Shown here: piece after piece, positions 54,604-60,200 of the stretch
Position numbering within the stretch: the stretch's first letter is position 1
Layout of the letters: every line of letters starts with the position of its first letter
Assembly: GCA_907165135.1 (NCBI GenBank)
Contig: OU015568.1
Span: 7,192,001-7,256,000, forward strand
From: Oikopleura dioica
Lineage: Eukaryota > Animalia > Chordata
Length of the DNA: 64,000 nucleotides
Reading direction: 5' to 3'
Program-made: the position numbers and the translations under genes
The notes under the pieces: model-generated
What the model was told of the DNA's origin: nothing
Seen by the model: the letters and a program-made list of their open reading frames with translations, nothing else
Database searches by the model: none

Positions 54604-54911
54604 GTTAAAATCCGTCTCGTTCTTTTTATCGAAAAGAATGAAATTCAGTCAGCAGCGAACCGCGTTTATAGTGATGCCTTGCGGTAAGAGATTTGCACTA
54701 GGGGAGATTTGATTTCCTTTCAGTATATTCTGCAGTGAAAGCACACCCATTTTGGGCGTGATGGGATTTTTCCCGAACGCGAAACTAAGTGATCATCAAC
54801 TTTGAAACTGATGAGTCAATTTTCTACTTGTCGAATTGCATTAACCTTTATTATTAAACTAATAACCGTGTCAGAAAGAAATCATCAGAATAAGTTGAGA
54901 AGTAGGTTGAA

Positions 54912-56889
54912 TTAGAATTTGAATCGGACTTCGAACATGAAAGAATCGTCGTCCAGCGCCTGTCGGAAGAGCTGAGCGTGTTGCCAGAAGTTTGGAGCAG
55001 TCAAGGACGCTTTGATGCTCAAAATCGAGTCCGGAGAGGGGTCATTAAAAACGAACTGCTCAGAAGGGTTGAATTTTGTACAAGAATCGCCAGAGCAAAA
55101 CTTCTATGTAATGTTTGTTTAGCACCCATCATCAAATAAGGTACTTACCCAAAAGACTTTTCCATTTTCATAAGTCGCCGAGTGAGCTGTGACAGAAATC
55201 GAAGAAATTCGCTTCTTTGGGAGTTTGAATTTGAACTCAACCTCTGCGTCGCCCGTAGAATCCTCCAACATAGCAAGGTAGCACATCTTCCAGTCCTTTT
55301 CTTCTTTCCTGAAGATTTTCCCGTTGTGATGCGCGAAAGAAGCCCAATTGGTAAAAGTCTCTCCGTCAATTGAGTAGTTGTCTTTCGCGCAATTATAACG
55401 AACGACGAATTCGGGCGAGTCTTCCTTCACTTCAATTACCTAGAAAATCCATGTAAAATGGAATTATAAAAGCATAGTATACCGTTGCTTCGACATTTTT
55501 GAGCGTCTCACCCCTAGAGGTTCTCCACTGCAAACTACCAGTAGTTCTTCCCGAGAACTTTTGATCCGTCACCGGCTTTGGGGAAAGGAATTCGACAGCT
55601 TCTTTTATCCAATCTTCTTCCTGCATCTTTTTCTCCCAATTGACCACCTTTGCCTTTTTCTCTTCATATTCTTTGATAAACGACGTCATCCAAGACTCAA
55701 TAACAAGTTGCTTTCGAGCTTCGCGAACTTCGTCGAGTTTATTATTATACCTCCACGTGGTATCCCTAAAGAACGAATATAAATATAAAATATCTGCCGA
55801 TTCCATACCTAACTCCCTCCGCCACGGAAAAAGAAAGACATAGATGACAGTTCCTCTTCCAGCCGTATTTGTACATCAAAGGCTTGTCGATCGCGTCCTC
55901 GCAAGGATCCACGTGAGTCCATCGACCGGGAGTCCGGACTTCTACCCACACGTGGTCTTCCAGAACGTTGTAGGTCTCTCGAACATGAAAGGCAAAGCTC
56001 CGAAGAATTGCACCAAAACAATTTGCCCACTCGCCACAGCGTCCTTTTTACCAGTTACAGAATAGTTCTTATTAGAGAATTCTGAAAGTCAATGTTTTGT
56101 AACTTTCCTTCTCTCGTTTCCAGTAGTTTCTCCGGGTTATTATATCTAACGATATTCCCATCCGTCCACTTGAAAAACTCATTTTTGAACCAATCCGTCA
56201 GAGTAACCAGCAGCGAGTGCTTCAGGAGTTCCCCCCGTTCGAAACCTTCCGTGTCTGCATTTTGCTCGAGCAGTTCCGAAGCTCTTTTGAACAAATCAGT
56301 GACGGGGATGGTCTCGCGAACTTTCTTCTGAGTTTCTGGATCTTCCCACTGTCGCACGTGACTCATGGCGCTGCTGCGAAGACGGAGAATCCGCTCTTGG
56401 ACGTCGAGAAAGGATCCATTGAACTTATGAAGATTTCTATTTCGATTTTGAGAAGTTGGCGAAGGTTGAACAGGAGTAGGCGTTGGCGGTGTGGGGGATT
56501 CCGCTGTACCTAGTAAAACGCTGATTTTTTGTTGATCGCTTGAACTTACCTTGAAGAGGAGCGCTGGATGGGCCAGATTGGTTAGTTTTCAGCAGAAACA
56601 CGGCATGAACAAACATCGTTTTCGTGTCCGAATTCAGCTCGTCAACTTGCAGCCAAGCTCCATCTTCCGACTCGGTGAAGCCCAACGAGTACAAGAAATC
56701 ACACGCTCCATCAACAGGTAAAAGAGTTTCTGTAAAGACCTTCCCAGCTACCTTTAACTTTCTATATTTCGCCTCCGAAGGATGAGTGAGGATGTTCTTC
56801 AAGATCTTTTCCAGCGTGTCGATTGCCTTTTTATTGTCAGGTGCAGCTTTGATCGCGGCAATAGCGATTTTAACCTCGTTAATGCCCAT
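54912..56889 (-). CDS. NGLY1: Cytosolic peptide:N-glycanase (PUB + transglutaminase-like core + PAW domain)
   Basis: PUB domain (LEKILKNILTHPSEAKYRKLK...LYSLGF), [77 protein letters not shown] and WQHAQLFRQ. Confidence 0.95.
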
Positions 56890-57244
56890 TTATTAATATC
56901 AAGCTTAAAAATTAATTTGAAGTGGATTTATTTATCTGTATAATATATGCATTCGTTACAGAATATTATCGGCACGGTAACTTGAACTTGAAGACATTAA
57001 AATTGAAAGCTGAATTTGAATCAAAAATCGATATACAGTAGACGGGATAAAGGTTGATGAAGCTTAGCTTTGAGATACACCACCGATCATTTAAACACAA
57101 GAAAGCATTGAGCACACTGAAAATGCTCCGAGAAAAATGAAAACAAACAAAAATCGGAAAACATAGGAACTGGAAGAAATGCGAAGAAATAGAGTAATTG
57201 AGCTTCTTTTTTAGTTTCGGCAAAAGCAAATTATAAGCGTCGGG

Positions 57245-60200
57245 TTAACTGTTTGGGTTTAAAAGGGGTTTGATGACGTCTTGGGTTTCGGTGACGGTGG
57301 TGGACTCGGTTTCGCAATCGCTGTCAACGCTGTAGGACTCATCTTGACGGCCTTTGTAGAAAAAGTATCTAGGAGAGCTTAAATCAAACTGGAAACAATT
57401 CGAAACTTACTCTTCTTGGAAGTCCTGCAGGCCATTCAGTTGATCGAACTGCGCGATCATCTCCAGCAAGTCACGGAAGGTCGGACGTTTCGTCGGTTCG
57501 TAATGACAACAAATTTTTATCATTTTGGTTATGTTATTGTAAGCGTCGTCAGCTTCTTTCGCAGGAATGCCTACAGCCAGTAGGCTCTTCGAAATCTAAA
57601 GACCAAATATTTTCTGAAATCAAGGAAGAGTACGAACCATATCGCGCCAGCACTTTTTGCTCAAAACGTTGAATTCGTGTGTTTTGAGCTCGATATCTCT
57701 CATGATTTCCGCTTTGACTTCTGCATTCGAAATGTCAACATACGGCATGCATCCGAGAGTGACAACTTCGAAAAGGAGCACTCCGTAGCTCCAAATGTCA
57801 CCCAGGGACATAAATTTTCCTCCTAGAAAAGGATGATTATTAATTTCAATTAGTAAGTTGAAAGACTGACCCTCAATGGACTCCGGTGGCCACCAGCGAA
57901 TAGGAATGTCGTTGATGTCCAGGCAGTAGTAATCCTTGTTCTCGTCGTTGATCATCGAACGCGTCAGGCCGAAATCAGAGATTTTAACCGTTTCGTACAC
58001 TTCTCCATTCACAGTCTCGTGACGGGCCACAAGACAATTTCGCGCTGCCAAGTCACGATGAATAACTATAAGTTCATAAGAAAATATACAAATGAATTAT
58101 CTACATTTGAGTTCCTCGTTTAGGAAGAACATTCCATCAGCCACATCGGCGCACATCTTCAAAAGACGCTTGACCGTAATTGATTCATCCGCTCTCCTGC
58201 CAGAAGTGTTTTTCTCTGGATTGTAAGTTCGCAGGTAGTGGCTTTGATACATAATTAAAAGGGAAATGAAATAATAGAGTTACTTCAAACTTTTGCAGTC
58301 CATATATTCCATCACCAAGCAAGTGGACATCATCGGGATCGAAGGATGAGAGATGTAGCTCCATCCGAAGTAATAAGTGATATGAAAGAAGCCGCCAGTT
58401 CTCCCGAGCGTCTGGAATGCTTCCCGCTCTTTGTGGATCTTTTTCGTATCTTGAACGTCTTTGAAGAACTAAAACGAATCAACAACCGCGAATCACGTGT
58501 AAAGACAACCTTGACAGCAACTTTATGGATGCGTCCTTCTTCTTCAGGCTCTTTATACTCAGCTAAATAGATGTCACCGTAGTTGCCAGTTCCGATGTAA
58601 GTCATGTCTTCAGCTGGTGTAAGGAAGTCGACATTGATGTAAAATTCTGCCTTTGTTTGAGCGGCACCACCTGCGGCATAGTATGCATCCTGAATTCGAT
58701 TTTAATATTTGATAACTTTCAAAGTTAACTTACTCTCTGGGCTAGATCAGGCTCGAAACAGTCCGGATTGACGGTCCACTCCATCGTCATGTACGGTTTC
58801 TTGTGCCTTGATCTGTAGAGAGCCACACCGCCAATAAAGCATAAGGTAAGCAAGGAAGAGACCAAGACTATCTCCACACTTTTATCTGCCATATTCACGA
58901 TAATCTTGTTAGAATCCGAAAAGGTCGTTATTTGAAAATGCGAATTGAAATTTTTCTCATCGATGCCTTTTGTGTAAAAATCTTCGTTGCGCTGGAAGAG
59001 GGTTGAAGTTGTGTAAATGCGAATTTGGAACTCGAACTCGCCCCGATCGAGGATGCTACTTTTTTCTTCGCCTCCCAGATTCAATAAACGGAAACCACAA
59101 AGGTCAGGGTCGCACCAGGGCCACTCTTCTCTAGGTTCTTGGCATAGATAGCAGCGTGATTCACCACGAATCACTTGGAAGGCGAAATCAAGCAACTCAT
59201 CTGTCCGATTCAAAGTGTACCACTTTTTAGGCGGTTTAGATGGATCATTCAAGCACTCGAAATTCAAGATGGTTTCCATGTCGTTCTTTTTAGACGCGGC
59301 GTAGAATAAATCCCAAAACTTCGTTTCGTTGATTTTCTCCGCAAAGTTTTTTCTCGCGGCATGATCTTGAATCGTTAGTGCTTTGGGTTCTCCGCCTTCC
59401 TTCGTAAATTCGAACTCGTAAAGAATCACGTAACCGTTTTGCTTTCGCCAATCTGGGGCTTGAAAGACCAGCTCGAGTTTTTTTGTCGACGACGTTGTTG
59501 CACTCCCACTCGCTTTTCTCCGTCAAACAGCCAGGAACCCATGATTTATTTTCCTGGCAGCCGGCACGAGGACAATCATTGATCTTGAATGGCTTCGTGT
59601 TGAACTTTGTCTTTGCAGAGGCGCGGTTTATTTCGGATTGGTCGTTTAGATCAACCCAGTTGAAGGATTCCTTGGCGAAAGTTTCGTTCAACAAGTTCAG
59701 TGTGACATCTTCACGCTTGTCCTCACAGCTGGCTCTCACAGCAGGATCGTTTTCTGAGCATTTATCGAGAGCTTTGAGAAAGTCGCTCGCTCCACAATCA
59801 GTGCCTTCGTTACAAGCGTACACTTTTAGTAGAACAGTTTTTCCAGTTGACAGATCATCGAGAGGCGTTGTCCAGGCACGTTCGCTTTCCTCCAGAACTT
59901 TTTCGATCTTCACATTATCGAAGATATCTCTCAATATATTTAGATCAAGCGTACGGTTGAGAAGACGCGGAGCTTCGACCTTCAAAGGAGTTCAAATAAA
60001 TTATATTTTTGAATCGAACGATCTTTTGCTAATCATGCTACATCATATTGTGAACTTTTTCCTGATCATAATCTACTGAGGCAAAGGAGGGATCATCGGA
60101 ATATGATTCCGAAAGGCTTGAACTTGAGTAATCTGCTTGCCTTTTCCTTCGCGTCCTCTGATCTTTTAGCGAGTAGAAACTACTATCATCGCTATCACGC

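Follow-up and report, generated by a model that had tools for sequence, protein, structure and literature searches.

An NGLY1 orthologue of Oikopleura dioica with an intact catalytic triad and a six-residue loop in place of the zinc-binding subdomain

Introduction

Is a peptide:N-glycanase (PNGase) that has lost its entire zinc-binding subdomain still an enzyme? The question is raised by a gene in a 64,000-nucleotide stretch of the genome of the larvacean tunicate Oikopleura dioica (contig OU015568.1, positions 7,192,001 to 7,256,000), which we refer to as the window. The gene lies on the minus strand at 54912-56889, has six exons and encodes a predicted product of ~580 aa. Judged by its sequence, it is the single-copy orthologue of NGLY1, the gene for cytosolic peptide:N-glycanase (EC 3.5.1.52). 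Where other PNGases have a Zn-binding subdomain with two CxxC motifs, its product has six residues. We consider this product most probably (about 0.7) a still-active, zinc-independent PNGase orthologue, in which a surface β-excursion would have been severed at the base and a short loop would span the gap. Below, we first describe the deletion and its distribution, and then weigh this reading against the alternatives.

Deletion of the zinc-binding subdomain

Searches with the window gene were run exon by exon, and the full-length work used two natural proteins from relatives, P0179 and P0180. Read in minus-strand order, exon 2 gives FFKW, then TDGNIV, then RYNNPE in one uninterrupted frame (Table 1). 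The bridge from W to R is six residues long and contains no Cys. In the phmmer comparison with PDB chains, exon 2 matched the mouse PNGase chain 2f4m (E 3e-11) in two pieces. Residues 4-82 of the mouse chain aligned up to FFKWTDGNI and residues 126-139 aligned thereafter. The 43 residues between them (83-125), which form the mouse Zn subdomain with its two CxxC motifs, were left unmatched. In yeast 1x3w, a block of 48 aa (residues 119-166) was unmatched by exon 2. An alignment with 28 other PNGases revealed that the missing block is exactly xPxCxxC...CxxCxxxxRF, the Zn-binding segment. No Zn-binding subdomain with two CxxC motifs lies between FFxW and RYNxP in the window protein. Its sequence indicates an NGLY1 orthologue by descent, and because the Zn subdomain is lacking we file it as a structural variant rather than among the canonical members.

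The best sequence and structure matches of the larvacean protein were mammalian NGLY1 and mouse PNGase (2f4m/2f4o for the core, 2hpl for PUB and 2g9f for PAW). It has the same arrangement of PUB, transglutaminase-like core and PAW, the same triad and the same glycan-binding residues. Exon 3 matched mouse 2f4m with an E value of 5.9e-18 and yeast 1x3w/3esw with 4e-16, and the Cys, His and Asp residues of the triad were all aligned. The exon also carries R, W, E and W residues identical to R210, W220, E222 and W231 of the yeast enzyme in the phmmer alignments with 1x3w/3esw. These four belong to the carbohydrate- and catalytic-site residues listed in the Dictyostelium PNGase paper (PMC3502110). 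All catalytic and chitobiose-site residues of yeast Png1 (1x3w, 3esw), whose core is homologous, align with exon 3. Yeast Png1 has and needs the Zn subdomain and is without PUB and PAW, whereas the window protein lacks that subdomain and has both of these domains. Transglut_core (PF01841) scored above the Pfam cut-off, and PAW was matched on exons 4-6; in the relative P0179, the PAW match reached an E value of 5.1e-39. The Pfam Rad4 match (PF03835) of canonical NGLY1 is lost in the larvacean protein.

An earlier note on this DNA, made from the letters alone, had described the junction and had claimed that the Zn-binding subdomain was missing in its entirety, both CxxC motifs included, while the triad, PUB and PAW were intact. 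Its coordinates and wording of the junction were correct. The phmmer matches to mouse and yeast and the Cys-free bridge bear out the loss, and the exon 3 alignments and Pfam matches agree with the rest. The bridge of four residues counted there describes the same gap, with a slightly different choice of anchors; from W to R there are six.

The junction in genomic DNA

Logan contigs of two DNA runs, X1 and X6, covered all bins of 54900-56900. X6 carries a different organism label and is ~5% different. Indels were listed in this interval only at 55139, 56071, 56433, 56524 and 56531, and none fell between 56108 and 56432. One 623-nt X6 contig spanned 55634-56257, and its sole gap, of 1 nt, lay inside an intron. 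With contigs of both runs free of indels at the junction, the deletion is not the collapsed segment that the earlier note had considered. The introns flanking exon 2 are 40 and 64 nt long, so there is no room for a cassette exon hiding the Zn segment. Five further contigs, genomic or transcript-derived and from different samples, showed the same junction. A stand-alone Zn segment was sought with the Zn segments of P0009 and P0026, which are weak queries, and these matched nothing in the genome.

Rarity among PNGases

Both anchors were identified in 215 PNGase sequences, which made up the survey and were drawn from the best 120 matches of each search, against a database total of ~2,800 PNGases. 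They came from vertebrates, lancelets, hemichordates, echinoderms, molluscs, cnidarians and arthropods, together with unnamed metagenome proteins. In 209 of the 215, the anchors are separated by 41-57 residues, with a median of 48. At least four Cys residues occur in 208 of these 209 canonical-length segments, and four segments have one intact CxxC only. The six-residue bridge was confined to 6 of the 215 sequences, all of them members of the window's own clade. In the literature searched, no paper joined Oikopleura with NGLY1, and loss of the whole subdomain was not described. Within the 215 sequences and this literature, the deletion was not seen outside the clade, contrary to one possibility raised by the earlier note. 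That note had also proposed an alignment with Ciona and other larvaceans. Metagenome relatives sharing the bridge could be aligned, while among the matches listed no ascidian or salp PNGase turned up, by name or by look-up, and no Ciona or other identified tunicate PNGase was present.

Relatives sharing the deletion

A HMMER search with the exon 2 piece over 1.84 billion representatives returned 58 matches. The top matches were short open reading frames (ORFs) on marine metagenome contigs from JGI and ENA/Tara, namely P0001, P0002, P0003, P0004 and P0029. All five read FFKW, six residues and R[YH]N, and their bridges are free of Cys. Exon 2 identity to the window was 85% for P0001 (contig L019) and 52-53% for P0002 (L016) and P0003 (L018), and P0004 and P0029 (L020) shared the deletion as well. 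Marine metagenomes thus contain at least four other lineages, related but divergent, with the six-residue bridge. The bridge is TDGNIV in the window and TDGNII, TDDNIT, TDGNIT or RDGHFT in the relatives, which gives the pattern [TR]-D-[GD]-[NH]-[IF]-x. On contigs L016/L017, L018, L019 and L020, the exons for PUB, core and PAW follow the window's order, and the triad is kept in all of them. The Tara contig L016 showed no synteny with the window beyond NGLY1 itself.

A profile built from single exons of the Zn-less lineages retrieved two long proteins. P0179 (582 aa, JGI contig L021) aligned to the window exon by exon, with all five introns absent. P0180 (478 aa) is encoded on the Logan contigs L022/L023, and L022 is 100% identical to the genomic exons of L016 with the introns removed. 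Because the introns are absent from L021 and L022, these contigs are derived from spliced RNA, and a Zn-less mRNA exists in two related lineages. Spliced Zn-less transcripts were observed in these relatives only.

In the maximum-likelihood tree of the exon 2 region, the four Zn-less rows formed one clade (100/100) on a long stem. This topology agrees with one old deletion event in a rapidly evolving group. When the window was compared with L019, synonymous sites were saturated (proportion of synonymous differences, pS, 0.71), the non-synonymous divergence (dN) was 0.11 overall and dN/dS was ~0.05 or lower. The catalytic exon was the most constrained exon, with a dN of 0.037. The triad and the R/W/E/W residues were invariant across lineages whose synonymous divergence is saturated. 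These results show that the deletion is genuine and old, that relatives transcribe the shortened gene and that purifying selection acts on it.

The clade also differs from other PNGases at near-invariant positions. CFTLxCRA has become CFGAILRS, D-WTDHVWTE has become NVLEDHVWVE with one extra residue, and RFPRYN has become NIVRYN.

Copy number and pathway context

In the 64.3-Mb assembly, the core exon and exon 2 had one match each. The gene is single, and its top PDB and database matches are PNGases. No second NGLY1, complete or otherwise, was found in the genome, which settles a point left for checking in the earlier note; PAW and DNA searches gave only exon 5 and exon 1 fragments elsewhere. 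Most of exon 5 occurs, at 90% identity, as two 265-nt copies on another contig (C4:6466749-6467014 and C4:6438498-6438763), which lie 28 kb apart. The exon 1 fragment is a 66-nt copy of part of that exon, 94% identical, at C1:10277525-10277590. These copies are isolated exon fragments and not a second gene. The other genomic Transglut_core matches resemble ordinary transglutaminases, although this is a guess from long ORFs. The genome keeps ENGase (GH85) and a Rad23-type XPC-binding domain. Judged by these sequence matches, the pathway context is intact, with PUB, PAW, ENGase and the Rad23-type domain all kept.

Predicted structures

We modelled a natural ORF of the L016 lineage with AlphaFold2. 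The fragment covers the helices, the junction, the Cys helix and the His strand. The mean predicted local distance difference test (pLDDT) value was 93. At the junction, the model places with confidence a loop of 10 residues that links a short KW strand to the PLILL helix. In Foldseek, this model matched mouse PNGase 2f4o with a template-modelling (TM) score of 0.80 and a root-mean-square deviation of 2.6 Å, and yeast 1x3w with a TM score of 0.79.

The model of full-length P0179 had core pLDDT values of ~85-98 and ~85 in the junction block, and low confidence was restricted to two linkers. The TM scores by target were 0.70-0.71 against the mouse core and 0.73-0.80 against the PAW structures 2g9f/2g9g. 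Against the PUB structures of mouse and human PNGase (2hpl/2ccq), the TM score was 0.83-0.84. The predicted models of the relatives thus match mouse PUB, core and PAW structures, and the fold is predicted with confidence in the absence of the Zn subdomain. A structure model was among the checks that the earlier note had suggested.

The next-best structural matches after PNGases were Rad4/XPC, with TM scores by target of 0.34-0.38 and identities of 11-18%. The transglutaminase-homology domain of Rad4/XPC has a related fold, but the match is much weaker than those to PNGases. Rad4/XPC is known as a DNA-repair protein and not as an enzyme. It is not known to have a catalytic triad or a Zn subdomain, whereas the window protein keeps the triad.

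Is the enzyme still active?

We infer the catalytic activity and the zinc independence of the larvacean NGLY1 from conserved residues and predicted fold. In the ancestor of this fast-evolving clade, the whole Zn-binding β-subdomain would have been excised in frame. The lost part would correspond to the excursion that, in other PNGases, connects the strand following the FFxW helix to the RFPRYN strand, and the short loop of the pattern given above would have replaced it. All the rest was retained: PUB with its p97-docking role, the N-terminal helices of the core, the Cys-His-Asp triad, the R/W/E/W residues and PAW. The protein most probably still deglycosylates glycoproteins in the cytosol as part of their quality control, and its fold would no longer rely on structural zinc.

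Activity without an intact Zn site has precedents in fly Pngl (PMC5599231) and Dictyostelium PNGase (PMC3502110). Diptera are without the second CXXC, and Funakoshi 2010 concluded that fly Pngl was inactive (PMC2866665). Galeone 2017 then found it active in the yeast RTL assay and dependent on the catalytic Cys, C303, in vivo (PMC5599231). The Dictyostelium enzyme is without the second Cys of both motifs, and it deglycosylates denatured but not native ovalbumin (PMC3502110). As in the window protein, the triad of these two natural PNGases is intact and the Zn site incomplete. They differ in that their ligand Cys residues are substituted and the subdomain is present, whereas in the window gene the whole subdomain is gone. 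Erosion of the Zn ligands is therefore already known and compatible with activity. Since partial loss of the ligands is known in Diptera and Dictyostelium, the deletion is somewhat less surprising.

Several points weigh against a still-active enzyme. In yeast Png1, the C165T mutation in the second CXXC abolishes activity (PMC2866665), and so does treatment with ethylenediaminetetraacetic acid (EDTA), as reviewed in PMC9102325. Without compensation, losing the Zn site could therefore have meant losing activity. The larvacean core is altered at otherwise conserved positions (CFTLCCRA to CFGAILRS and DWTDHVWTE to NVLEDHVWVE), which may affect its function; the clade-specific core substitutions near the junction are candidates for compensating the loss of the subdomain. 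The confidence of AlphaFold is no proof of stability or activity. Finally, the oligo-dT RNA-seq runs X13 and X14, which have the same species label as the best DNA run, gave only 1-2 reads on 54900-56900, partly <90% alike and at the 3' end. We take this near-absence of reads as evidence for neither side. The check by reads and RNA-seq put forward in the earlier note was thus answered in part, by DNA contigs that are continuous across the junction, and not by these few poorly matching RNA reads.

At 88% likeness, X13 and X14 gave almost no reads, and L019 and L021 differ from the window by 20-30% in nucleotides. The species label probably covers deeply divergent cryptic lineages, and X13 and X14 probably come from such a lineage.

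The loss of the Zn subdomain might instead have killed the activity. What survives would be a p97- and mannose-binding adaptor, a non-catalytic scaffold as first proposed for fly Pngl and known for Neurospora PNG1. In favour of this reading, the yeast CXXC point mutants and the EDTA-treated enzyme are inactive (PMC2866665, PMC9102325). PUB and PAW are well conserved, and deglycosylation-independent roles of PNGase have been proposed (PMC2866665). However, the known inactive PNGases have lost triad residues. Neurospora crassa PNG1, a homologue kept for a non-enzymatic role, has a mutated triad (PMC9102325, PMC3502110), whereas Cys, His, Asp and R/W/E/W are invariant here. The lowest dN of the gene falls on the catalytic exon, against saturated synonymous divergence. 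Moreover, fly Pngl was once deemed inactive for the same reason and later shown to be active (PMC5599231). With the triad and R/W/E/W invariant and no exon more constrained than the catalytic one, we disfavour the scaffold, which the earlier note had offered as one of two alternatives, and regard it as unlikely.

In the yeast Png1-Rad23 structure, the Zn subdomain reportedly adjoins the active-site cleft. The earlier note had described the subdomain as one wall of the cleft, linked to the preference for misfolded substrates, and its first option was that removal could open the active site, so that folded glycoproteins would be deglycosylated as well. The subdomain is indeed absent, and specificity can be relaxed by deletion, as an engineered yeast Png1 without helix H1 gains activity on native substrates (PMC2791212). 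However, the PNGase cleft is described as helix H8 and the six-stranded sheet (PMC3502110), and according to Wang 2009 it is the N-terminal helices H1-H3 that let the yeast enzyme tell native from denatured substrates (PMC2791212). The N-terminal helices are kept here and modelled with high confidence. The Dictyostelium enzyme still rejects native ovalbumin with its degenerate Zn ligands (PMC3502110). A cytosolic enzyme also meets mostly retrotranslocated, unfolded substrates, and there is no obvious selective reason for an opened cleft. In view of the literature on the cleft and on H1-H3 and of the Dictyostelium specificity, an open-cleft enzyme for folded glycoproteins is unsupported by these papers and stays speculation, and a rather improbable one.

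An artefact, either a collapsed ~130-nt assembly segment or a gene model hiding a Zn-coding exon, has a negligible chance of explaining the junction, as the assembly is borne out by contigs of two DNA runs, an identical junction occurs in five other contigs from different samples, the exon frame is continuous between its short flanking introns and the Zn-segment queries match nothing in the genome.

Gene structure

The features of the gene are collected in Table 1. The frame across intron 2 is kept only by the GA..AG splice (E-G-RCGEW), and the GT-AG alternatives are out of frame. The related contig L019 has this GA donor and AG acceptor too. A relative confirms the splice, as its transcript contig L021 joins window ~56108 to ~56043 with an E-G-R junction. 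Population variants are concentrated in this intron, with 11 substitutions and a 1-nt indel within 56051-56100.

Table 1. Positions in the window of the exons, the non-canonical intron, the catalytic codons and the deletion junction of the larvacean NGLY1 gene
Feature	Position	Strand	Description
Exon 1	56550..56889	-	ATG at 56889; PUB domain (p97-binding module), Pfam PUB E 3.5e-20; GT donor 56549-48
Exon 2	56108..56509	-	Pro/Thr-rich linker, N-terminal core helices and deletion junction; one continuous ORF
Upstream anchor FFKW	56166..56177	-	End of the helix and strand preceding the Zn subdomain in mouse and yeast
Bridge T-D-G-N-I-V	56148..56165	-	Six codons in place of the 41-57-residue Zn-binding subdomain (two CxxC)
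Downstream anchor from RYNNPE	56112..56147	-	RYNNPE itself at 56130-56147
Intron 2	56044..56107	-	64 nt; non-canonical GA..AG ends
Exon 3	55809..56043	-	Catalytic core, Pfam Transglut_core; starts RCGEWANCF, contains DHVW and HVDPCE
Cys codon	56036-56038	-	Catalytic triad, exon 3
His codon	55952-55954	-	Catalytic triad, exon 3
Asp codon	55907-55909	-	Catalytic triad, exon 3
Exon 4	55483..55765	-	C-terminal core helices, linker and PAW start; junctions agree with the spliced relative P0179
Exon 5	55149..55439	-	Central PAW (mannose-binding) domain, Pfam PAW E 1e-21
Exon 6	54912..55103	-	PAW end (Pfam E 1.7e-6); stop codon 54912-54914

The intron positions vary between lineages. No intron separates LLDTR from GRCGEW in L016. 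In L018, an intron with canonical GT-AG ends lies five codons upstream, and in L020 the helix preceding WFKNEFF is interrupted by an additional intron. In L019 (590-851), the homologous intron is ~260 nt long against 64 nt and contains repeated, partly palindromic gcgaagcgaagc... motifs. This enlarged intron may be a small inserted element.

The L021 contig (1-4790) corresponds to window 54912-59988 on the minus strand. It is a single 5-kb transcript-type contig with two intron-free genes, an upstream kinase-like gene (window ~59988-57105) and NGLY1, and the spacer of ~370 nt between them is retained. This arrangement suggests either a polycistronic (operon-like) transcript or overlapping untranslated regions.

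Implications

A still-active, zinc-independent PNGase is the reading we prefer for the larvacean gene. A wider proposal goes further. It holds that larvaceans carry a naturally minimised, zinc-independent PNGase, that the Zn subdomain is dispensable for catalysis, and that its removal may alter substrate access, through a relaxed need for unfolding or through insensitivity to redox state or metals. Taken as a whole, this proposal is doubtful.

The larvacean NGLY1 offers a natural experiment on what the Zn subdomain is for and on whether the enzyme needs its zinc site. An entire subdomain has been removed, and strong selection has preserved the catalytic machinery over a very long period, yet the Zn site is reported to be structurally required. 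If the enzyme is active, the Zn subdomain would be an accessory and not part of the catalytic minimum. If it is inactive, this would be an animal NGLY1 with an intact triad that is kept for a non-enzymatic role. The question bears on how NGLY1-deficiency variants in the region of the Zn subdomain are read. It also bears on the design of smaller or metal-independent PNGases, for which the larvacean protein, if active, would provide a compact template for NGLY1/PNGase reagents, and on the general reduction of proteins in the compact larvacean genome.

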